Shown: piece after piece, positions 9,719 through 61,370 of the stretch
How the letters are laid out: every line of letters starts with the position of its first letter
Position numbering within the stretch: position 1 is the first letter of the stretch
Assembly (NCBI RefSeq): GCF_006345805.1
Contig: NC_043001.1
Coordinates: forward strand, 88,722,001 to 88,786,000
Direction of reading: 5' to 3'
Origin: Octopus sinensis
Lineage: Eukaryota
DNA length: 64,000 nt
Notes under the pieces: model-generated
What the model saw: the letters and a program-made list of their open reading frames with translations, nothing else
Databases searched by the model: none
What the model was told of the DNA's origin: nothing
Translations under genes and position numbers: made by a program

Positions 9719-9794
9719 GTCGCAAACAAGAAATTATTAAGTTGACTGAACAACTTATTGCTGCCATCACAAGTAGTGATTTTGAAGGATACAC
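9719..9794 (+). CDS. CaMKII: CaMKII association (hub) domain exon 1 in window: (G)RKQEIIKLTEQLIAAITSSDFEGYT
   Basis: Acceptor ttttcatcgcAG and donor AC|GTACGT. 76 nt, phase 1 to phase 2. The peptide matches the RKQEIIKxTEQLIxAI...DFExYT start of the CaMKII hub and splices in frame to 11552. Confidence 0.95.
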
Positions 9795-10812: not shown

Positions 10813-11551
10813 CCCCTCTCATTATCATTCCATATACACTTCTCTCATACAACATCTTGATTTTCACTGTACATTACTTATCAATGTGAAACACCTCATG
10901 CTTCTGATCCTCGCAGCACAGAATATGTGCAAACTTCTCTATCTCTGCTTATATCCTTGCTAGGTTTACCTTCCCTTCTAGATTTTTGATATTTTTCTCT
11001 GCTATTTCCTTTCTTCTGATTTTTCCAAGCTTGTCTCTTTACTACAATAGCACCATCTACTGTCATGTTCCACCTCTGCATCACTTTGATTTCACCTGGG
11101 ACCTTGGACCAGGCACAGATCTGGTCTGTAGTGCTCAGCAGATTGTCTCATTTTGCTCTCTATTATAAATTTCTATCTCCTTCCTACTGTTATAAACTAC
11201 CATTTATGATATGTAGTACCACTTAAAATTCCTTCCCACCCACTTCTAACTTAATTTCTTTTCCTTGTTTCTTGTTTTCTTCTCTTATGCGCTCCAGTCT
11301 CTTTTGTTTATTTATAAAATGATTTCTCAACTACCTACATTTACTCATTTTTCTACATAAAATTTCATTACTGTTTACTTTAAATAATTATCTATTCCAT
11401 TTTCCCCATACTTTTATCTTCCTTGATATTCTGAATTTATTCCCCCACCCTTCCACCTAACAGTCTAAATATGTGTCCGTTTCCATTATGAACTTGTTGT
11501 GACTTTTTTTTTAACACAACATTTATCACACATCTTAATTTTATCTTTCAG

Positions 11552-11646
11552 AAGATTTGTTGACCCTCATGTCACAAGCTTTGAACCAGAAGCTTTGGGA
11601 AATCTGATAGTTGGAATGGATTTTCATAAATTCTATTTTGATCATG
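11552..11646 (+). CDS. CaMKII: CaMKII hub exon: [31 protein letters not shown]
   Basis: Acceptor ttatctttcAG and donor G|GTAAGT. 95 nt, phase 2 to phase 1. Carries the hallmark [26 protein letters not shown] motif. Confidence 0.97.
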
Positions 11647-12216: not shown

Positions 12217-14215
12217 TGTTTGGAGGAACAGGTGAGAGAAAGAGTACTAATTAAAGGTTGATATTCATGACAAGCTGATGATAAAAGAACCAGATGTATA
12301 TCCCTATACACAAAATATACCTAGATAAATATATATATATATAAATTTACAGATAGCTGTATTTGCACATGCACAATACATATAAAGATACACATATACA
12401 TTTATACATGCAAATATGTATGTGTAAATGTATGTGTGTATGTGTGAATATACATGCACATAGGTAGATACATTCCTATATAAATACCTGCCTTCATATA
12501 TGTCTGCACATGAACATATCCTTACTAAGACATGCCTGTGAATATGCATGTACATATCTGTGTAAATGTATATGTGTGTGTGTATATGCACTCAGAATTT
12601 TTATGTGTACATATTTTGTCATACAAACTTACATATACTTGCTCATTTATGTGTGTTAAAGATTTGATATCCTATACAAGAATGGAGAGTGAGAAAATGG
12701 GATTGGAATTAATATAAGTATACTTAGCTTGAGTTGTTAAGGATTGAGAAAGTTAGTTAATTCTTCCCCAATAGGGAAGTATCGATGGAAATTTCACAGG
12801 TCTAAAATATCTACGGGTTCTGAGGTTTTATGTAGACATCAACATGTTTATTTTATTTCATTAGATGTAGTTACATAACTAACAATGTTTTTCTTTACTG
12901 GAGTAGGCTTTTGCAAAGGAATGAATTTTCCATTTTGTGTTAAAGAGTATATTACTATCTTTTAGAGTTGTAATTTGATAGAACAGTTTTCCTGTTAGTA
13001 TTGCAGAATGAGTATGTATGTCTATAGTACGTTTCATTAAAGGTATTAGCAATTAAACCTATGTAGGACTTATTGGCTGAGTTGATCTCTGAAGTTGCCA
13101 TACATGTTTGTGAGGTAGTATTTGTGGTTAAGAGCTGTAATTTATTAGAACCAGCTAGTATTTGTGTAAGAATTTAAAGAAAAACTTGCTACAAAGGTAG
13201 ATAATTGCAAGTTCCATTTTTTGGTGTGATTTAACTTTATAGTCTAAAGGTAATGGACTTTTTCATGGAATCCAATTTTCACAAGTATTTCATTATAAGG
13301 GCTAAACATTTTTTTTTTTTTTTCTTTAGAAGAAAGTGTAGGAAATGTGAATGAATAGTTCTCTAAATTCTTGATGATACTCTAAAGGGAGTTTGAGAAT
13401 GTGTTCATATAAATGCATAAGTTTTTAAATAAGATTCATGAACATCTTTATGTGTGATATTTTTTAAGTTTAAATTTGCATCTCAGATAGTTGACTATTT
13501 TGAAATGTGCTTCACTGATGATGAGAAACCCAGATTCTTAACAAAATTCTGTATGTTCTTTTTGAATCTAGCCATAGATTGAGAATTGAAGTTGTAAAGT
13601 ACAAGTAGTCCATGGTCTTTAAATACATCTCCATTTAGGAAAGGAAATGCATCAGACTGGCCTTGTGACTATATAGTCTGACTGTATTACTAACTTCTGT
13701 AGAAACTTTGTAACAATAAAAAATAAAAACTTTGAACAATAAAAAATCAGACTTTAACTCCAACTTCACAATCAGGACTACCACATAATGAGACTTATAA
13801 CTGTTGCCTTTTTCAATTGGAAATACATACTTGTATTTCTGTGTATATAATTATGTGTGTGAGTATGTGTATACATTTGTCTGCACACAGATAATATATA
13901 TATATATATACACACATACATATATATATGTATATAATATGTGTATATATATATATGTGTGTGTGTGTGTGTATATATATGTAATTATATATGTGTATAT
14001 ATATGTATGTGTATATATATATATATGTATATATATATATGTATATATATATATGTGTATGATGATGATATATATGTATATATATATATGCATTTATATA
14101 TGTATGTGTATATATATGCATATATATGTATGTGTATATATATATGCACATATATATGTATGTGTAATATATATATATATGTGTGTATATATATATGTGT
14201 ATGTATGTGTATATA

Positions 14216-14264
<49 letters not shown>

Positions 14265-15217
14265 GAATATATATATCTATTTATGTGTATGTATATATAT
14301 ATGAATATATATATATGCATGTTTGTATATAAAGTGTGTGTATAAATGTGCATGTATATTTGTGTCAGGTTTAATCTTATTGTGTAGCACCTTGGGAAAG
14401 TGTCTCCCACTACATCCTGAGGCTGACCAAAGCCTTGTGTGTGAGTTTGGTAGATGGAAACTGAAAGAATCCTGTCATATATGCAGTGTGTGTACATTTG
14501 TGTTGTCTTGAATTGATGTCATATGATAATCATAAATAATTGTCACTATCATACACACAGCATCATTCATTTCCAATATTTTGTGAAAACATGGCCATCC
14601 ATAAGAAAAAATTACTATGCTTGGACACCGGTAAAGGTTGGTGACATGAGCATCCAGCTGTAGAAAATCTGCTGCACTAAACTACTGCCAACCCATGCAA
14701 GCATGGAAAGGTGGCTATTAAAACAATGATTGTGTGTGTTTTTGTGTGTATAGGTATGAATATATGGACATGTGCATTTAGCATTAAAATGGTGGAGTAG
14801 GGCGTATGCTTGTCATCCTCTAGTCTGTTAGGTAGGACAGTAAAGTGTCATACACAATAAGTGGTATAGTTGAATCATTGCCAAATATCCTAAAGATACA
14901 GGATATACAGTAGGTTGACGAAATTATAGAGATACCAAACCGTTGGACGAGGTTATGAAAGTTGTCATATCCCTGGTGTAAACCATGGCTTGTATGTTGT
15001 ATTCTTGGTTTTTGAATACCAAACATGGGCATGTGATTTCTTCTGGTGCTGTGTGTAAAAGAAAATGTATGGAGGTTATGACTGGTTTTAAAGGTGTTAG
15101 GAGTGAGTTTCATTTAATTCCTGGCATAGCTGAAAGTGATGATATACATGTGTGTGCATGTAAACATACACACACACATTCACATGCCTATATATTAGTT
15201 ATGGTATATGTATATAG

Positions 15218-18200: not shown

Positions 18201-18822
18201 GACCAAAAACTTCTCTCTTTAGCTTATGTTGTCTCTGTCTTTCTCCAACCTATTTACAGATTGCATTTGGTGCATTTTATCATAGCACCACCACTAGAGA
18301 GGTTGCCACTGCAAACTAATCAGTTCTCTTTGTCTCTATTCAAGGCAAATGTAACTGACAAGATGAGTAGAAGAGAGTGTGGTGACCAAGAGTGTGAATG
18401 GTAGGAACGTGATAGGGGAAATAAAGTGATAGAAACTAGAAAGTGCTAGGGAGAGAAATGAAAGGAAAACTGTACTAAACATACAAATTATTGATAGGGA
18501 GATTGGATAGAAAAACAACTTTATGTGTATATACACTGACATACATATATGTATATACCGTGTACATGTGTACAGAATATATATACATTTGTATGTTATA
18601 TATATGAATGTATATAAATATATGTGTTCATGTTATGCGTATGTATGTGTGTGTAAACACACACATAGATACATATATATATATCCAAACACACACACAT
18701 ATACATATGCTTATATATGTGTGTATTCATATATACATACACTTACATATATGTATGTAATGTATGTATATGCATATTTATATTTGTATACATATATGCA
18801 GAATATATGTCTGTGTGTGTGG

Positions 18823-18856
<34 letters not shown>

Positions 18857-19597
18857 GCACAGGTATGACTGTATGGCTAAGAACTTTTCTATGCTACCAC
18901 ATAGTTTCAGGGTCAATTTCACTGCTCAGCGCCTTGGAGACGTTTTTTATACTGTATCCACAGGTTAACCAAAGTCTTGTGAGTGAATTCAGCAAATGGA
19001 ATCTGAAAAAATTTTGCTGCATGTTTGCATAGGTATTTGTCTGTATATGAGTGTGTATCTCTTCTCTCAACAGCACATGTAAATTATAAAAGTCCCATTG
19101 TCATACAAGTAGTATCATTCAAAACAAGGTAATGTTTTCCTTAGGACCTTCAAATGCATACATTACAATGGCTGGATATGTACTGTGTTCAAATCGACTA
19201 GGGAAATATTACATTACTGAGAAACAGCTTAGACTTGGCAACTGAAAGGGCATTCAGCTATAGAAAATCTGCCTCAATGAGTTTTGTCTGACCCTTGAAA
19301 GTGTGTGTGTATAGAATATATGTGTGTATATATTTTCCTTAATTGTCTATAAGTCAGAATAAAAAGCACATACAATATAATACAGCAGGTATATCTTTAT
19401 ATCACCAAGCAATATTTTACTGATTATGACATACAACTAATCAGAATGTTACTGTTGGTATTCATGTCATATATTGCCACTACAATATTCTGACGAGTTA
19501 TCAATCATAACCAGTAATATATTGCTTAACATGATGTTTGTCTGTCTGCTTATGTATCTATCTATTTATCTATATATATATATATATATATATATAT

Positions 19598-20397: not shown

Positions 20398-20428
<31 letters not shown>

Positions 20429-20437
20429 ATATATATG

Positions 20438-20472
<35 letters not shown>

Positions 20473-20546
20473 GTATGTATAATATATATGTATATATATA
20501 TATAGTATATATATATATATAATATATATCTATATATATATATATA

Positions 20547-20608
<62 letters not shown>

Positions 20609-20907
20609 GTATATACATATGTATATACATATGTATATACATATATATATGTATATATTATATGTATATATATATGTATATACATATATATATATGTATA
20701 TATGTATATATATATTATATACATATATATATATGTATATGTATATATATATATGTATATATATATATGTTATATATATATATGTATGTATTATATATAT
20801 ATGTATATATATATGTATATATATATATGTATATATATATGTATATATATATGTATATATGTATATATATATGTGTATATATATATGTATATATATATGT
20901 ATATATG

Positions 20908-20942
<35 letters not shown>

Positions 20943-21436
20943 GTATTATACATATATTATATATATATATGTATATATATATGTATATACATATATATAT
21001 GTATATATATATGTATATATATATATGTAATATGTATATATATATGTATATGTATTATATATATGTATATAATATGTATATACATATATATACGTATATT
21101 ATAGTATATATTATGTATATACATATATATACGTCTATATATAGATAATATGTGTATATATATGTGTATATACAGATATATACGTATATATATATAATAT
21201 ATGTATATATATGTATATATATGTATATGAATCTATATGTATATAATGTATATACATATAGTACGTATATATATATATGTATATATATATGTATATACGT
21301 ATTATATATATATATATTATATATTGTATATATATATGCTATACATATATACGTATATTAATATATATATATATATATATATATGATATATATAGTATAT
21401 ATATATGTTATATATATAGTATATATATTATATACG

Positions 21437-21469
<33 letters not shown>

Positions 21470-21592
21470 TATATATGTATATATATATGTATATACATAT
21501 ATATACGTATATATATATATATATGTATATACATATATATACGTATATATGTATATATATATGTATATATATAGTTATATACATATATATAC

Positions 21593-21623
<31 letters not shown>

Positions 21624-21800
21624 GTATATATATATGTATATAACATATATATACGTATATATATGTATATACATATATATATACGTATATATATATATAT
21701 ATGTATATATATATGTATATATATATGTATATACATATATATACGTATATATATTATATATATGTATATATATATGTATGTATATATGTATATATATATA
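19840..21800. repeat. About 2-kb compound (TA)n/(TATG)n microsatellite
   Basis: Almost pure TA with interspersed G and C. Similar smaller arrays lie at 5990-6450, 13840-14340 and 43960-44830. Confidence 0.98.
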
Positions 21801-22090
21801 TATAATATTAATTAGAGACAAAACCACTATTATGCAAATCAAACAAAGAAGACTTAATCCACACATAAAATTTAAAAAATTTTATAAAATAAATATAATT
21901 AAGATTAATTATTATATTTAATTTATATAAAAATTTTTATGTATTGGATTAAGTCTTTCTTTGTTTGATTTGCAATATAATGGTTTTGTCTCTAATTAAT
22001 ATTATATTATATTTTATTATAAATTTGGATTCAATTATAAATCTGATTTTCCCTGTAAATTTGGATTTATTCCCTAATATTTATTATTAT
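21801..22090. mobile_element. AT-rich fold-back element (about 100-bp inverted arms, right arm extended)
   Basis: tataatattaattagagacaaaacca (21801-21826) is the exact reverse complement of 21981-22006, and the arms stay similar inward. Flanked by (TA)n. Confidence 0.65.
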
Positions 22091-23806: not shown

Positions 23807-24601
23807 TACACACAGACATGCATGTACTCATATAGATAGAAAGATAAGATTTGATATATATATATATATTGAGAAAATGTATGTAGTATTGATAGTATTG
23901 AGAATTTGAATTAAAGAATGCATGGCAATGTAACCTTTTTTTTATATCATAAAATAGATGACATTCTGTGCTTTCTTTAAGTATTTCAAGCCATAATGTA
24001 CTCTTTCTTCATTATGATACCAAATATTATGAATGAGCTGAAATAACTTTTGATCCCATGTATTTCACACCTATTTTTATCCTGCTGCATTACGAAGAAG
24101 AGTTTTTTCTATGCTTGAAAAATGTAAGAGAAAATTTAATGTCATTTATTTTATGAAAAATCATTTATATTGCCACAGCTTCTATTGTTCAGATGTAATA
24201 TATATTTATATACATATCTGAATTTAAACTAATTTGCACTGATATTTTCATTATGTATTATTTGCTATTCATTACAAATTGCTCTGTTCTTTATAACACA
24301 AGCAACTTCTTTAGTTATCCATTATGACCATAATACATCCTTACTTTTCATAAGCTATCCCATATTTTTGTAAGAATACCATATTATCCATAAGAGAACC
24401 ATATTCCACATGTGGATAGCATGAACTAGCTGTGACTATTACACTGTGTTTGCTGAAGGACAACTGAAGACTTACTCTAGAATGTTTAGCTGTGCCAGCA
24501 GTAGCGGCTTTAAACAAACTAACTGTCCAGCCAGCTTGCCAGCTCACTAGCCCATGAATTGGTGGTTTTAATGCCCTGTTTTACTCTTCTCTTTACTGAA
24601 G

Positions 24602-24712
24602 CTAAATACTGTCATAGAGACACAATATCTAAGAATGATGGAATATTGGAATATTGTATCCCTCGGACTCCCACCATCGTAGAACAAGGCAAATTTCCTG
24701 CTGACAACCCTG
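24602..24712 (+). CDS. CaMKII: Candidate alternative cassette exon in the CaMKII hub: (A)KYCHRDTISKNDGILEYCIPRTPTIVEQGKFPADNP
   Basis: 111 nt (multiple of 3), phase 1 to phase 1, matching the flanking exons, and stop-free in that frame. Pyrimidine tract ttttactcttctctttactgaAG and consensus donor TG|GTAAGT. No transcript evidence is available. Confidence 0.6.
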
Positions 24713-27169
24713 GTAAGTGCTGAACCTGATGATCATAATGATGATGCTGGTGATGATGATGATGCTGATGCTGATGACTGATCATAGGTGGCTCATTGCT
24801 ACAGCTAGATATCTTAGGCAGCTACTGCTTCATCTTCTTGTCCTTGTTGTCTTTCGCCTCCTACTTCCTCTTCCTAAACTCTATCACCTCTTCTGTTTTG
24901 TATTTATTTGTACTGGCTGAGGTGTTCCCTGTGTATTTTGCCCTCCCCCATTCGTCATCCTGATTGCTTATCTTATAACAACAAGTATACATTGCAGTGA
25001 TGTGATAGTTCTAAAGCATGGCTTCTTTTCAAAGAAAGGTTTTCACAATGAAGACATACAACATTGAGGCAGGTTGTGATAAGATTTCACCTGCAGAGTA
25101 AGTAATATAGAAACAAGATATTTTACATTAAAGTGGTATAAATGTCATTTTGAAAAAGAATATGTGACATTGGGGTGGGATATAACTTTGATGTGGAATA
25201 CATAAGGATCAAGTAAAATAAATGACAAAAATAGGATATCTCATTTGAAAGCAGTAATGCACCATCAAGGTAGGCTATACAACTCTGAGGTAAAATATAT
25301 GGCATTAAGAAGGGGTTATGACACAGAAATAGGTTATCTTATGGGTATCACATTGGAATAGTATATAGGACTATGAAATGATATATATGAGACTGAGTTG
25401 ACATTCATGTCAAGTATACAGTTATAAGACTTTTCACAGGTAAATTTTGTTACTGAATGTGAAGCTTTTAGATTGAGGTCCTAGAGCATTAAACATTAAC
25501 CCCATGAAGCTCATTTACTTCTTTCTCATAAACTACTAATGTATATCAGAGTGAAAAAATGGAAAGAAGTTGTGGACAATTGGGTTGGTAGGATGAAATC
25601 TAAAAAGGTGAAAACTGTTAACAGCCCAGACCACTTCATTGTAAGTAGACATCACAGTGTATTTTCAGTTCAATGTACTGTGTCCATAATCAAGATATGA
25701 CTTTCAACAGTGCAATCTATGTAAGTGTAAGTAGGTACCATATTGTGGTGTACTTTGCAGTACTGTGACCAACAGCATAATTGTGGAACTGAGGAATGCT
25801 TAGATAGCTAAGTTTAAATCTTCCCATGGGAAAATGATTGACCTATATATTATCCAGAGAAACATTTAGTTTTTATTCATTTAGTACTATGGAAACTAAG
25901 ATCGAACCTATAGATGCTTATTATTCACAAACGATTCGCATAATGGTGGCAGTGAATAATGTCCAAAATGACATTACTTACAGTATTGGTATGGTGAGCT
26001 GGTTGTTGAACTAAGGCTTTCAGAGTTTAGATGTGTAGCACTCTGAGTTATATAGGCTAATAGCACTGCCACATATCTGTATTGTAGATCAATTGTATGG
26101 AAGTATTAGTACATCCATGCTATTATTACTGCCAGACATTCATCTACATATACACAGATTCACTGAACACATACACACACAAATAAATTTGTAAACACAT
26201 ATTTGCGTATAGATTTTCAGGGTATTTCCTTTCATTATGTTAGGTATATTTATAAATTATGACATATTCCAACATTTCATTGAGGTTGCTGGTTGTTACA
26301 AGATAATTTGATGGAATGTATTAGTAACTAATTCTTGCATAACTTGGATGTCTAACAATAACCTTGTTCAAAGTGAAATTGTTTTCTAGACTTTTCATTG
26401 ATAATCTTAACAATTAAATTGTTTTTTATATTTTAAACTATAATAGTTAATTACATTAAAAACTTTTCATTACTGTTACTTATTTTAATAAGATTTTGAT
26501 GATGAAAGCTACAATAAAACTTCAACAGAATTCCAGCTAATAACTTAGAAGAATGGCAAAAATAGAGACTTAGTCCAGCACTCTTCCTATCTCTTTCAAT
26601 TCCAGCAACCTCATATTTTAAAATGTTAAATTAGAAGCACCTTTTACATAGAAATTTCTCTATCATATTACTGCAATATATTTGTTGTTGCTGCTATTGT
26701 TGTTGTTGTTATTTGAATTGTTCCTCAGTTTTTGTCATGTTCATTTTTTGTTTGTTTGTTTTTTTTTCCATTTGTTTTCAATAGTTTTGTTTTGTTTTTT
26801 GCTGAAACGTCTAGCTTCCAAAGTAGTTTAAATCCATAGTTAAAAGCACAGAGTTCTGTTAGGTTGGAATGCTCAAGAAAAAAGAATGGAATTTTGTTTA
26901 TTTAAAACTTATAATCCAGGTTTGGTATCTGTGTTAATGTCCAGCCTTGTTTAATTCATTTATCATCCATCATCATACAGCCCAGATGCTTCATACTAGT
27001 TCACACTAAAAAAAATCCATCAACAAATGGCCCAAACACACATGTCTACATCATACTATGTTATATCTACACATTTCTTCACAATAAACGTTCAAATGGT
27101 AAGTCAAACAGTAGTCAGATTTTCTGTAGTAAAGCATGCTACACTAACTATAATTAACCAAAATACAGA

Positions 27170-35321: not shown

Positions 35322-35436
35322 TGCTATCAAAGAACAGTAAGACATTGAACACCACAATCTTGAACCCTCATGTACACCTTCTTGGTGACGATGCAGCATG
35401 CATTGCCTATGTTCGACTCACACAGTATATTGACAG
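35322..35436 (+). CDS. CaMKII: CaMKII hub exon: [39 protein letters not shown]
   Basis: Acceptor tctccttgcAG and donor AG|GTAAAG. 115 nt, phase 1 to phase 2. Carries the hallmark [26 protein letters not shown] motif. Confidence 0.97.
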
Positions 35437-38422: not shown

Positions 38423-38982
38423 TATAAGTATCATCACTTACTTTACACACTAAGGTGTGATTTGATGAGATTTGGCTGATATTTCTAACAGGTCAAGTAA
38501 CCACTTAGAGACTGCCTTGTTAATATATATATTTAGAGAGTTATAAGCTGTGATCTCAGAACATTGGGGTTAACCCTTTCTGTTGAAAAACACTACTTCT
38601 CTTTTGATTTATTTTGAAAATAACAAATTTAGTGAAATAACTGTAATTATGAAGCTGGTGTTTAGAGCATAAATTAACTTGAAATTTTAATGAAAGGTTC
38701 TAATTTAGATTCCTTTTAAAACAGATAATTTGTATCAAAGGACTAAAGGTGGTCTCAGATTAAACAACAACAGAGAATGCTTAACAAGATAGGAACTTTG
38801 GTTACCCCTTATCTATGTCATTTTAGTCCTGAAGGTATTTAGTCTGTAGCAAATCTATCCTATTTTATACATTTTGATTAACTGCATATTTTAATATTAT
38901 GAGTACCACAGTGAGGTATGTATTTCGGTTGTAAGTAATCCATGAGTAAAACTGTTCATTCCTGTTGTTATTGTAATTTCAG

Positions 38983-39103
38983 AGATGGTGTTCCAATCAC
39001 TGTTCAGTCAGAGGAGACAAGAGTGTGGCAAAGGAAGGATGGCAAATGGCAGAATGTACATTTTCATCGCTCAGGATCATTGCAAGCTGTCTCATCAAAA
39101 TAG
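38983..39103 (+). CDS. CaMKII: CaMKII last coding exon: [39 protein letters not shown]
   Basis: Acceptor gtaatttcAG, phase 2. Carries the hallmark [23 protein letters not shown] motif; TAG at 39101-39103. Confidence 0.97.
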
Positions 39104-46970
<7,867 letters not shown>

Positions 46971-53689: not shown

Positions 53690-53739
53690 TACATACATAT
53701 ATACATACATATTTATATTTATATGTAGCTACTTGGATA

Positions 53740-56720
53740 GATTTCAACTGGTATTGGCCCAAGCCATGACTAACTTAAAAGCACCACTTACAGATGATGT
53801 TTAATCACGTTTAATTTTTACAGTCATACTCTGGGCACTTATAACCGATCCAAGTAAAGAATTATTGGTTGCAGAGCTATATCTGAGTGTAGGTGGTTTA
53901 TCTGGAATTTGTCCAGTAACTGTTTGTTATGGGATATTTTTCTTCTCTTTTACATCTTGGCACAATGTTAAAGAGAGCAGGATCAAGTGAGGTGAAATAA
54001 TTCTGTCTTAATGTTTTGATGTGAGCTCAGCTTTTGCTGAGAATGTTTGGCATGAGAACCAAGATTTGGGTAAAAAAAAGTTGATGTCAATATTATTAGG
54101 GCAATGGTGATGGAATATTTTCCATATCATGCAAATGGTATAGTGCTTATGGTAGCTTTGAAGGGGCTAGAGCTTGAGTTTCTTGAACCAATCCCACTAA
54201 TCAAGACTTGTCACTGATTTTTTTTTTTGTGACTAATCCATGAAGGACTTCAATTTTTATAATACTTTGTTTCATGTGGAGAGACCTCAGCTGACAGCAG
54301 TATTCAAGGAGAGGACAGGAAAAGGTAGAGAAGAGAAAAAGAATAGCAGAAGCATTCCTGGACCTAAGAATCCAAAGGATTCATGAGCACATCCTGTGGA
54401 CCATGTCAACTTTGCTGTTTATATGGGTACTCCAGCTTAAGGTATTATAGGTAATTACTCCAAGGACTCTAGCAGTATTTGATGCCATGATCGTTGTGTT
54501 CAGTGAAGGAGAAAGAGGTGGATTATCTGTATCCTCTTTTCTGAAGTTGATTATTTGAAATTTATCACCATTTAGCTGCATATGGTGTATGCTTTTCTTC
54601 TTTTTTCTTTCTTTTTCTTTAGCCCATTAGATAACAGCAAGCAGATCTAATTGGAGATATGCCCAGTCTCCTCTGTTGACGACCTTCAGCAGCTTAGAGT
54701 AATTTTCTTACAGCCAAGTTTGATGGCATCTGTGATGTCACGAATGTAAATAAGAAAGAGAAGTGGGCCCAACACAGTGTCTTGTGGGACTCCATTAATG
54801 ATTCTCACTGAGTTTGATTGAACACCATCAACTGCAACATACTGGGTTCTGTTCACAAGAAAACACTTATTCCACTTTAAAAGTTTCCCCATAGACTCTA
54901 ATACTGGATGGTTTCTCCCACAGGATGCTGTGATCAATCTTTACTGAAGCTAAGGCATATTATATCAGTATAAGAGCCCTCTCTTAGAGTCTTTAGAATG
55001 TCTACAAAGTGATGTGGGAATTTTGTTAGGCAGTCTCTCATTGCAGAAACCATGTTGGTTGGAATTAAGGAAGTAAATTGCTCAAAATCTCATCACACTT
55101 TCAAATAATTAGATGACATGAGAGATAAGTGAGATTAAGTTATTAATTGGTAATTCAATGTAAGTGAATTTCTTCTTTTTTAGAAAAGTAGGGCAACTGA
55201 GATAGAAAATGATAAGGAATATAACCAACATCCAGTGATTTCCTCCAGAGAATGGCAAGTAGGGATGTGAATTGATGTCGACATTCTTTCAGGATTCTAG
55301 TGAAGAACTTATTGGGGCCTGCAAATGAGTTACTTTCTTAATTTTATTTATATCTACTATGATATCCAGAGTGCCAAAAGATATGTCAGATAGGTTGTGC
55401 TGTCCAGATCAACCATATTGGGATTGCCGAAAGCAGATGTTGTCCAGATCAACCATATTGGGATTGCCGAAAGTAGATGTTGTCCAGACCAACCATATTG
55501 GGAATGCCGAAAGCAGATGTTGTCCAGATCAACTATATTGGGATTGCCGAAAGTAGATGTTGTCCAGATTAACCATATTGGGAATGCCGAAAGCAGATGT
55601 TGTCCAGATCAACCATATTGGGATTGCCGAAAGCAGATGTTGTCCAGATCAACCATATTGGGATTGCCGAAAGTAGATGTTGTCCAGACCAACCATATTG
55701 GGAATGCCGAAAGCAGATGTTGTCCGAACCAACAATATTGGGTTTGCCAAAAGCAGATGTTGTCCAGACCAACCATACTGGGATTGCCGAAAGCAGATGT
55801 TGTCTAGATCAACCATATTGGAATTGCCAAAAGCAGATGTTGTCCAGACCAACCATATTGGGATTGCTGAAAGCAGATGTTGTCCAGATTAACCATATTG
55901 GGATTGCCGAAAGCAGATGTTGTCTAGATCAACCATATTGGGATTGCCGTAAGCAGATGTTGTCCAGACCAACCATATTGGGATTGCTGAAAGCACATCT
56001 TGTCCAGACCAACCATATTTGGATTGCCGAAAGCAGATGTTGTCTAGATCAACTATATTGGAATTGCTGAAAGCACATCTTGTCCAGATCAACCATATTG
56101 GGGTTGCTGAAAGCAGATGCTGCCCAGGCCAACCATATTGGGATTGCTGAAAGCACATCTTGTCCAGATCAACCATATTGGGATTGCTGAAAGCAGATGC
56201 TGCCCAGACCAACCATATTGGGATTGCCGAAAGCAGATGTTGTCTAGACCAACCATATTGGGATTGCCGAAAGCAGATGTTGTCCAGAACAACCATATTG
56301 GGATTGCCGAAAGCAGATGTTGCCCAGACTAACCATATTTGGATTACCGAAAGCAGATGTTGTCCAGACCAACCATATTGGGATTTCCAAAAGCAGATGT
56401 TGTCCAGACCAACTATATTGGGATTGCTGAAAGCAGATGTTGTCCAGACCAACCATATTGGGATTTCCAAAAGTAGATGTTGTCCAGACCAACTATATTG
56501 GGATTGCTGAAAGCAGATGTTGTCCAGACCAACCATATTGGGATTGCTGAAAGCAGAGCTGTATTGTTTCTGCAGAATCTCACCATATCTTTAGCATCAC
56601 TATGGAAATTGTTGTCTTTGTCAATCAGATGTCCAACAGATGAAATAGCATCCTTATGCTTTTGGGCAAATGAGAACACTTTGGAATTGAGTTCTATTTT
56701 GTCACTGGCCCAGTTCTCCT
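53740..56720 (-). mobile_element. CR1/L2-group LINE ORF2 remnant, interrupted by the 40-bp array
   Basis: Minus strand gives FSFAQKH..SSVGHLIDKDNN..DAKDM (56560-56700), NLSDISF...AGPN..ILKEC..LWRKSLDVG (55200-55390), VAVDGVQSNSVRIINGVPQDTVLGPLLFLIYI (54686-54937) and MQLNGDKFQ. Confidence 0.88.
55401..56556. repeat. Minisatellite, 29 copies of a 40-bp unit (tgtccagaYcaaccatattgggattgccgaaagcagatgt)
   Basis: Units start every 40 bp in exact register from 55401 to 56521, with substitutions only and no unique spacers. Confidence 0.97.
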
Positions 56721-59009: not shown

Positions 59010-61370
59010 TCAATAAAACATGTCAGAAAAGAAGCACACTAAAGATTAGAGCAGTAATTATTAAAATAAAAAGTTAAATTCTGGCCCAAAGGCCACAGCC
59101 TTTTGGACAGCTTGTCAGCCTCTATACAAAGACAAAAAAATTAAACTTTCTACCATGCGGATGTGAGGAAACGCTCAGATATCGTGATCTAATGGCTAAC
59201 ATATAAAGACATTAATGAGGAGGGGGTTATCTCACCTGGACCAGAGGATAAAACAACCCTTATAGACCCAAAATAGCCTAACCAGCAAACAGGGAGATCC
59301 AATTTTCCAGTAGGTAGCCCTTGAAATGGACACATTTAGAGAAAACTTCCTTATGACTATTTAATGCGCCAGGTTTAGCATACTCCTCAAGAATTTTAGA
59401 TCTCTCTATGATGCAGATTTTGCAATGGCCACTCCTATTAATATATGGGCTTGGGTGTTCTTTTATTTTCCACCTAATGTCACATGGGGTCCCTTAATCT
59501 TTGAAGCACCACGCATGGCTGGCCAGGGATATGACAAAACATCTTTCTGAGACTCTGAAGGATGACTGGTGGTTATGGAAGTGACGTTTGAAAGATGTAC
59601 TCGCCGATCTGATATATTTACAAACTTGTGATGTGGCTATGTTCGCACTCCTGGTATATCTCTAGTAGGCTCTGGGCCTGGGGATACTGTTGGTAACACC
59701 GTTGCTGACATTGTCAATATGGCACAGTGATCCAGTGGTGTTATTGCTATGGATATCATTTCTGGTCATATGGTTGGCAATGAAGCTGCTGGTGTTAGTG
59801 TGGGTGTTGGTAACATATGGTGCGGGGCTTGTCATTCCATTGGTGTCGATGATAATTGTTTGGTCATCATCTGTGGTGGTTGTACTGGGGACGCCGGATA
59901 CCCCTTCTGTGTCTCTGGTCCTGGATTGGTCATCGTCTCTAGGTGTGGCAATTGTACCAGTGGTAACATATGGTGTGGTCACTCTATTGGTGTCAATGAT
60001 AAGGGTTTGTTTATCATCTGTGGTAGTGTTACAAGGATTTCTTGGCTAGAGGATAGATTCGAGATTCTCTTGCTTATACCCTTCACTAGGTTCTTGAAAA
60101 CTATAGTGGGGTAGTAGGAGGCTGTGCCAATAAAGGACAGCTTCTCATTTAGCTTGTGATAGGGTCTATATGTACCAGAGCCTAGATCTAAAGTAACATC
60201 AAGGAAATCTACTGTGAGATTAGTCTCAATGGTGATCTTGAGTCCCATTGAGCCTAGGGCACTAATTAGGTCCTTTCTAAGTCTAGCTAGTGTGTGCCTG
60301 TTGGCTCCTCTTGAGATGGCTAGCGCGTCATCTCTGTAAAGACTGAAAAGGACCAAAGGAAACCTCTTCTCTACGATGTCTGGGATGTATAGTCTGATAA
60401 GATCACTGACATTGATGCTGTCATAGGCTCTCATAGCTACTTCGAAGGAGCCCTTGGGGTCAGACTGCTTGACCCACATCAAATCTTTGTTGAACAGCAC
60501 CGTCTTCCTGACATGCATGATAACACTAATATTACTGTCACTAATATCTGTGAAGCCCTTAGCAAAGGAAAGTGCCTTCAATAACAACTCTTTTGAAATC
60601 AATGGATAAAAGTTGACAATGTCAAACTGTGTAAGCCTAGCCCTGCCTCTCCTCCGGTTGGCAATAAACCTTGAGGTCACCTCATTGGTGCTGTGCCATA
60701 GAGGGAGGCTTCTGTGCCTCCTTACATCATCATTAATCTTCCTCAGTATATACATACTCGCCTGGCTAATCTCAGGTTGATCAGGTGGCATTTGGGGTTA
60801 GAGGCAAAATTCAGCTTGTGGTCCTTTAAAGTGATAAAGGCATTTCTCTTGGCCAAGATCTTTACTCTGTCTGCTATACCTAGCCTAATTGCTATCTGTT
60901 TAGCTTCACAGTTAATGTTATTATAAGTGTGTCAAGGAGTGCGTCTGTATTTTTGTGTGATTGAATCATTTAAAAGCCTATTGTGTGTGTCCATCATGTA
61001 TAAGTTCTTAGTCTTATCTGAAAAGATTAAGTTCTTAGTCTTATCTGAGAAGATTAGAGTTTCTTATTTTTTGTATATCTTCATGGAGTTTGCTTTGAAA
61101 AAATAAAAAGAATTTAGGGAATTTCAGCCTGGGTATTATGCCCAGTAGGTCCACTTTGAAGGCCTCAAGTTCCTTGATTGTAGGTGGGAATTTCCTAGAC
61201 TTGACACCATACATGTTGGCCTTGGTAATATATATATATATATATATATATAAAATACAAAATGGGACAAGAATGCAAAACATCCGGACAACTAGGTTAA
61301 ACAAAAAGGAGACAACAAAGCATCCAGAAAGATGATACAAAGAAAACAAGGAAGGGTCATTCAAAGTTTT
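59010..61370 (-). mobile_element. Decayed Penelope-like retroelement (RT plus C-terminal GIY-YIG/CCHH, Naiad-like architecture)
   Basis: RT ORF 59979-60791 has FDIVNFYP, LYRDDAL and VDFLDVTLDL. Upstream frames give YGVKSRKFPPTIKEL and FITLKDHK. About 59290-59650 gives YIRSASTSFKRHFHNH...WKI...CKICIIERSKIL...LNSHKEVFSKCVH. Frameshifted. Confidence 0.9.

Follow-up and report, generated by a model that had tools for sequence, protein, structure and literature searches.

A putative conserved cassette exon within the hub domain of cephalopod CaMKII

Results

CaMKII hub exons in the octopus window

The stretch of Octopus sinensis DNA analysed here (64 kb, hereafter the window) carries four constitutive exons of the hub domain of CaMKII (Table 1). 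Their spliced product matches the solved hubs 2W2C, 2UX0, 1HKX and 5IG3 at E-values of about 1e-62 to 1e-64, and its homologues carry PF08332, the CaMKII association domain. Exon B ends with ...TTC TAT TTT GAT CAT G/gtaagt at 11646 (FYFDH followed by G), and exon C starts with ag/TG CTA TCA AAG AAC AGT AAG at 35322 (TG followed by ...LSKNSK). The residues SSDFEGYT and KNSKTLN are common to the window and to the protein model P0001 (UniRef A0A0L8GXG3), which we take from its accession series to be that of Octopus bimaculoides, and they are different in the cuttlefish Sepia.

The acceptor of exon B (11548-11554, tttcAGAAG/A) is a NAGNAG tandem acceptor, and its second AG, if used, would remove one codon (Arg of ...GYT-R-FVDP). 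After the CaMKII stop, the 3' UTR can be aligned between octopus and cuttlefish for about 130 nt (39104-39236 of the window, 53703-53825 of the cuttlefish locus L010), and the block made of the last exon and the 3' UTR (38966-39236) is 76.6% identical; since this UTR is alignable despite saturated synonymous sites, it suggests a conserved UTR element. P0001 and a second model, P0123 (UniRef A0A0L8GXU4), are hub-only models of 165 and 163 aa with differing N-terminal leaders, which were looked for in the window and not found there. They may be fragments, or else hub-only isoforms that start from internal promoters, in which case they would presumably be comparable to vertebrate alpha-KAP.

Table 1. 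Coordinates of the CaMKII hub exons, the putative cassette exon, its flanks and the host introns. L010 is the Sepia pharaonis locus; L011, L012 and L013 are from non-cephalopod molluscs.
Feature	Sequence	Position	Strand	Remarks
Hub exon A	window	9719..9794	+	(G)RKQEIIKLTEQLIAAITSSDFEGYT; tblastn and spliced translation
Cuttlefish counterpart of exon A	L010	7879-7954		85.5% identical, dN/dS 0.011
Hub exon B	window	11552..11646	+	ends in phase 1, donor GTAAGT; upstream partner of cassette
Cuttlefish counterpart of exon B	L010	12286-12380		88.4% identical, dS 1.03, dN/dS 0.013
Upstream intron segment	window	24567..24601	+	probable branch-point region, pyrimidine tract CTCTTCTCTTTACTGAAG, acceptor AG
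Putative cassette exon	window	24602..24712	+	111 nt, phase 1-1, encodes AKYCHRDTISKNDGILEYCIPRTPTIVEQGKFPADNP
Cuttlefish counterpart of cassette	L010	19105-19215		AG...GTAAGT
Downstream intron segment	window	24713..24829	+	GTAAGT, GAT/TGA-rich run 24727-24782, block TAGGTGGCTCATTGCTACAGCTAGA 24785-24809
Hub exon C	window	35322..35436	+	(V)...(R); downstream partner of cassette
Cuttlefish counterpart of exon C	L010	47192-47306		83.5% identical, dS 1.29, dN/dS 0.019
Last coding hub exon	window	38983..39103	+	DGVPITVQ...SLQAVSSK, stop
Cuttlefish counterpart of last hub exon	L010	53582-53702		89.3% identical
Host intron, octopus	window	11647-35321
Host intron, cuttlefish	L010	12381-47191
Host intron, Batillaria (gastropod)	L011	6566-6880		315 nt
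Host intron, Tegillarca (bivalve)	L012	10300-10672		373 nt
Host intron, Elysia (gastropod)	L013	11433-12831		1399 nt

A stop-free segment with splice signals between exons B and C

The initial annotation had pointed to a 111-nt, stop-free, phase 1-1 segment with a pyrimidine tract, an AG acceptor and a GTAAGT donor in the intron between exons B and C, and all of these features are present in the sequence. tgttttactcttctctttactgaag (80-85% pyrimidine, with AG) lies directly upstream of the segment and GTAAGT directly downstream, in the donor context CTG/GTAAGT. The splice sites of the segment match those of the four constitutive hub exons in quality. Spliced translation gives exactly AKYCHRDTISKNDGILEYCIPRTPTIVEQGKFPADNP between FYFDH and VLSKNSK, as had been proposed, and the frame is then open to the natural stop at 39103. 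The segment does not behave as a poison (NMD-inducing) exon, as the inclusion product reads to the normal stop. Its flanks had been described as non-repetitive, which does not hold entirely, since a (TGA)n microsatellite (24727-24782) starts 15 nt past the donor.

With GTAAGT, a pyrimidine tract of at least 70%, phase 1-1 and no stops as criteria, the segment is the sole candidate in the 23,675-nt host intron (31% G+C). At least one such candidate was found in 5-14% of introns simulated with a second-order Markov model, and in 27% when GTRAGT was accepted as donor. From the octopus sequence alone, the cassette is thus weakly above chance.

The cuttlefish orthologue

A protein search with the insert alone gave one match, P0121, an ORF of 50 aa carried by nine Logan contigs. 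Its sequence, MADFPLLFTE/AKYWRREPVAQNAGILEYCIPRTPTILEQSKIPADNS/GKL, corresponds to a read-through of the acceptor and of the ggtaag donor. P0121 is 100% identical to positions 19074-19223 of L010, the 55.7-kb genomic locus of the Sepia (Acanthosepion) pharaonis CAMK2 model P0122, and its attribution to a related octopus was rejected on this ground. One of the contigs, L009, is 100% identical to L010 18979-19441, and contigs L001-L008 are from a close Sepia relative, about 3% diverged in the intron. The Sepia cassette lies between the counterparts of exon B (...FYFDH) and exon C (VLSKNNK...). Conservation of frame and splice sites in the orthologous intron had been set beforehand as a test, and this is what was found in Sepia pharaonis, where the AG, the pyrimidine tract, the GTAAGT, the 111-nt length and the frame are all kept. 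The positions of AG and GTAAGT are also the same in the second Sepia species. This conservation rests on two lineages, octopus and Sepia, and a passage citing Huang et al. 2022 (PMC10925132) places the split between Octopodiformes and Decapodiformes at 285-340 Myr.

A BLASTN comparison of the whole window with the whole of L010 gave five collinear blocks that are not of low complexity, namely the four hub exons and the cassette. The cassette block (24522-24894 versus 19029-19386) is the longest (379 nt) and the top-scoring one (215 bits, versus 97-192 for the exon blocks). The cassette is found once in the window and once in the Sepia locus, with no sign of a repeat family within these two loci; as for an exonised transposable element, no protein-family match was found, and no second copy in either locus.

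The encoded peptide is conserved in part. Two cysteines had been noted in it, which is true of octopus, and of these the second is conserved in cuttlefish and the first is replaced there by Trp. The P-R-T-P motif is present as stated and is conserved in cuttlefish. It belongs to a conserved core, GILEYCIPRTPTI(V/L)EQxKxPADN, within a peptide that includes the stretch GILEYCIPRTPTIVEQGK, and this core holds a Thr-Pro site (P-R-T-P) and an R-x-x-T-hydrophobic site.

Age of the cassette and growth of the host intron

The host intron, 23.7 kb in octopus and 34.8 kb in cuttlefish, has an identical position and phase in all five species of Table 1, and the same phase-1 intron position was seen in many other molluscan genomic ORFs. 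The comparison with other molluscs, which had been called for at the outset, gave a divided answer, with the cassette present in cuttlefish and no cassette-like sequence in the introns of Batillaria, Tegillarca and Elysia at either the protein or the DNA level. A homology search for genomic ORFs of the constitutive exons returned non-cephalopod molluscs only. The short, cassette-free introns of the three non-cephalopod molluscs indicate that the cassette arose in the cephalopod lineage, before the divergence of octopus and cuttlefish.

Substitution pattern in the cassette

Between octopus and Sepia pharaonis, the cassette is 79.3% identical without indel, with a dN of 0.165 and a dN/dS of 0.29. 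The constitutive exons are 83.5-89.3% identical, with saturated synonymous sites (dS 1.0-1.6) and dN/dS of 0.011-0.019; the pS of the cassette (0.40) is lower than theirs (0.56-0.66). Against contig L001, dN/dS is 0.23 for the whole cassette and 0.12 for its last 24 codons; the first 13 codons are poorly conserved (about 0.4). The dN/dS check that had been proposed for the cassette thus gave 0.23-0.29, with a coding-type pattern. With 23-24 substitutions only, the changes fall on the three codon positions as 9/2/12 against L010 and as 9/2/13 against L001 (codon-position chi-square p=0.021 and second-position binomial p=0.005 for the latter). When the same substitutions were re-placed randomly, a stop appeared in 59% of the trials and the mean number of amino-acid changes was 15.8, versus 12 observed; the simulated probability of no stop together with at most 12 amino-acid changes was 0.016. 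The CaMKII frame, stop-free in octopus and in two Sepia species, is the sole frame of six that is open in both octopus and Sepia, the other five being closed in at least one species. Within Sepia (L001 versus L009), 18 substitutions and 2 indels were counted in the 566 nt upstream of the conserved island, versus one synonymous change in the 195-nt island itself (Poisson P=0.015; Fisher p=0.058, borderline).

Conserved intron flanks

Octopus and cuttlefish share 86% identity along the 35 nt of the upstream intron segment and 95% along the 20 nt next to the cassette, and CTCTTCTCTTTACTGAAG is invariant in the alignment. Further upstream (700 nt before 24567), identity is 0.487, versus 0.49-0.50 for shuffled or unrelated sequence. 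Past the donor, identity in successive 20-nt bins is 0.85, 0.60, 0.85, 0.50, 0.80 and 0.65, then falls to background; for the introns flanking the four constitutive exons, identity is 0.50-0.65 over the 20 nt nearest the exon, and background is reached after about 20-40 nt. The block TAGGTGGCTCATTGCTACAGCTAGA (24785-24809) is nearly invariant between octopus and cuttlefish, with TAGGTGGCT-ATTGCTACAGCTAGA about 75-95 nt past the cassette, and a conserved tract of the flanks reads CTCTTCTCTTT. The downstream segment is a candidate carrier of splicing-regulatory elements. No canonical UGCAUG motif was seen by eye at the cassette; its UCUU/CUCUCU-type pyrimidine tract resembles what we take to be binding sites of PTB-type repressors. 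A GAT/TGA-rich run occurs in both species with different lengths (24727-24782 in the window, about 19230-19275 in L010), and, instead of being a neutral simple repeat, it may belong to the conserved regulatory flank.

Skipping and inclusion

The skip form is expressed, as a spliced cuttlefish Logan contig (L014, run SRR9970002), 98-99% identical to the exons of S. pharaonis, joins exon B directly to exon C. The cassette is likewise missing from two octopus-type models and from the Sepia model; among them P0001, the best match to a query made of flanks and insert, is identical to both flanking exons, joined directly. Since annotated proteins and a spliced transcript skip the segment, the words "hidden" and "cassette" of the initial annotation both fit it. 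The query with flanks and insert returned, among cluster representatives, only hubs without the insert. No insert-containing transcript or protein was found by the insert-only query, whose sole match was the genomic ORF P0121, so that inclusion of the cassette is inferred. These searches covered cluster representatives only, so that the absence of inclusion products is weak negative evidence, and there seemed to be a bias towards short proteins. Three more matches (P0125-P0127) came from an exhaustive HMMER scan over 1.84 billion representatives and were set aside as chance matches to internally repetitive proteins. The cassette peptide has no match in Pfam and, by the exhaustive representative search and Pfam, is unrelated to linker exons or to known proteins. 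A literature search on cephalopod CaMKII splicing found nothing.

Many short "proteins" in the databases (P0008, P0128-P0144) are genomic ORFs that run from the CaMKII hub exon into the intron (FYFDH, then G-K/E...). The apparent insert of P0008 at the same site starts G-K-L, the translation of ggtaag..., and was read as a gene caller crossing a short intron. Such intron read-through ORFs are a trap in searches for hub insertions.

Place of the insert in the hub fold

The FYFDH/VL junction aligns with ...FYFEN401/L402 W403 of human CaMKII-alpha, which would put the 37 residues between the equivalents of Asn401 and Leu402. A helix ends at this site and the flexible "pocket loop" begins there; the residue aligned with Trp403, a Leu in octopus, comes two residues after the insertion point. 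The hubs of other animals have no residues there, and the cassette is not part of the conserved core of PF08332. AlphaFold2 predictions of the hub with and without the insert, from a 36-sequence alignment, had low confidence in either case (mean pLDDT 57.6 and 66.9); they agree only in placing the junction where a helix gives way to a poorly defined loop and in keeping the four core strands. The pocket loop is at the upper edge of the hub cavity, where Trp403 (Leu in other isozymes) flips on ligand binding, and roles in ligand binding, in the thermal stability of the hub and in kinase-hub docking have been ascribed to it (PMC12148480).

Discussion

Our results support the notion that the segment at 24602-24712 is very probably a functional, evolutionarily conserved alternative coding cassette exon of cephalopod CaMKII. 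The initial annotation had proposed a hidden in-frame cassette of the hub, and the Sepia orthologue lends strong support to this proposal by its frame, its splice sites, its coding-type changes and its flanks, while the current models skip the segment. We read it as a real optional coding exon because over about 300 million years cuttlefish kept it in the same intron, together with its frame and its splice signals.

The main rival is a conserved non-coding intron element, acting as an enhancer, in splicing or in the processing of long introns, of which the open frame and the splice-like ends would be by-products. Such an element would account for flanks that are as conserved as the "exon" (86% / 79% / 80% over the upstream flank, the cassette and the downstream flank), the identity of the cassette being below that of the constitutive exons and not above that of its own flanks. 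It is also compatible with the 41% of simulations with 24 random substitutions in which the frame stays open, with the probability of 0.14 that the 8 splice-site bases stay intact, and with the failure to find an inclusion transcript in searches of cluster representatives. However, the changes follow a codon period in the CaMKII frame (9/2/12-13; p=0.005-0.02), and fewer amino acids have changed than would be expected (P=0.016-0.03). Moreover, the conserved block starts about 35 nt before a strong acceptor, GTAAGT stands at the exact in-frame position in both species, and the length and phase of the segment match those of the neighbouring exons. An RNA structure signal, an Rfam family or complementarity to CaMKII exons was not detected either. 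Folding as a structured non-coding RNA gave z-scores of +0.63 and -0.68, and Rfam matches were sub-threshold and on simple repeats; as an editing-site complement, the segment showed only 7-8-nt chance matches to the four hub exons. A recursive splice site was ruled out as well, the acceptor being followed by CTAAAT in octopus and CCAAGT in Sepia, with no AG/GTRAGT. On the codon periodicity and the exact in-phase consensus splice sites the non-coding explanation fails, and we consider it unlikely.

Less likely still is a real exon that yields no productive CaMKII coding cassette, belonging to another transcript of the same strand or serving as a rarely used decoy. The N-terminal third of the peptide evolves almost freely, the peptide is without relatives in protein and Pfam searches, and its inclusion would break up a domain that is among the most conserved in the protein, all of which would suit such an exon. 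Yet both lineages kept phase 1-1 and a stop-free frame that fits the CaMKII neighbours, the C-terminal 24 codons have a dN/dS of 0.12, and the comparison of 64 kb with 55.7 kb contains no other conserved block able to serve as partner exon. A chance pseudo-exon in a neutrally evolving intron, which the single-sequence features would allow in 5-14% of simulated introns of like size and composition, is refuted by the cuttlefish orthologue, since neutral octopus and cuttlefish sequence is saturated (dS 1.0-1.6) and the adjacent intron is at the null of 0.49, and the 260-370-nt block is nonetheless the best-conserved stretch of the locus.

As an alternative coding exon of CaMKII, the cassette would be present in some of the transcripts, probably those of certain cell types or stages, and the conserved flanking elements, including the UCUU/CUCUCU-type pyrimidine tract, might control this inclusion. 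Inclusion would add 37 residues at the start of the pocket loop that borders the hub cavity. Speculatively, the cassette might then act as a phosphorylatable surface module that alters hub stability, kinase docking or partner binding in some holoenzymes; among possible roles this one seems the most likely, as the conserved core places a Thr-Pro site and an R-x-x-T-hydrophobic site at the pocket loop. Effects on stoichiometry, subunit exchange or MAPK/CDK input, which the initial annotation had proposed, are speculative as well. A wider and far more tentative reading, which we regard as possible rather than probable, would join these points. Coleoids would have gained a regulated 37-residue module before the split of octopus and cuttlefish, as the host intron grew from less than 1.5 kb to tens of kb, and would have kept it for about 300 Myr; the module would provide a second, switchable class of neuronal holoenzyme, differing in stability, stoichiometry, kinase docking or partner binding and tuned by phosphorylation of the conserved R-T-P-T site.

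Conserved regulated alternative exons of mammals and flies have a length divisible by 3 and conserved flanking introns, together with reduced synonymous change and faster protein evolution than constitutive exons. The cassette resembles such exons, which are often neuron-specific, in its length, in about 100 nt of conserved flanking intron, in its reduced synonymous divergence and in a protein sequence that evolves faster than that of the constitutive exons. It is also similar to the linker exons of vertebrate and insect CaMKII, which are in-frame cassettes of the same gene family that generate isoform diversity. These linker exons, however, encode parts of the disordered kinase-hub linker, whereas the cephalopod cassette would lie inside the folded hub domain. 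Vertebrate CaMKII combines up to 9 optional exons, among linker exons 13-21, and human hub exons are described as constitutively spliced (bioRxiv 10.1101/721589). The pocket loop itself varies in vertebrates by point substitution (Trp versus Leu) between paralogous genes, whereas in octopus the products of a single gene would differ there by a spliced-in module of 37 residues.

CaMKII is a central enzyme of synaptic plasticity, its hub sets the assembly of the 12-14-subunit holoenzyme, and this hub is increasingly viewed as an allosteric regulator and a drug site. On the wider, tentative reading given above, the cassette would be the first case in which isoform diversity resides in the hub of CaMKII. 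In vertebrates, alternative splicing mostly affects the linker, the hub exons being described as constitutive; a hub cassette kept for about 300 Myr, and found only in the lineage whose brains are the largest among invertebrates, would therefore amount to a natural experiment on how the hub works. Current gene models of octopus and cuttlefish miss this conserved exon; given that neutral sequence between the two is saturated, a simple comparison of octopus and cuttlefish introns can expose such exons.

Other features of the window

On the reverse strand, positions 59979-60791 hold a 270-aa ORF with YRDDALAI, reminiscent of the YxDD motif of reverse transcriptases; it has no Pfam match at E<=1. 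A tandem array with a period of about 120 nt (55397-56536) contains long repetitive ORFs on both strands, for example with repeated MLSRSTILGLPKADVVQINHIGIAESRCCPDQPYW. G+C content goes down to 22.5% in the 20-24 kb part of the window. Very long TA/CA-type microsatellite tracts lie at 13800-14500, 18500-19000, 20400-21900 and 44470-45030, and these create spurious ORFs of 130-214 aa as well as sub-threshold mir-297 matches in Rfam.
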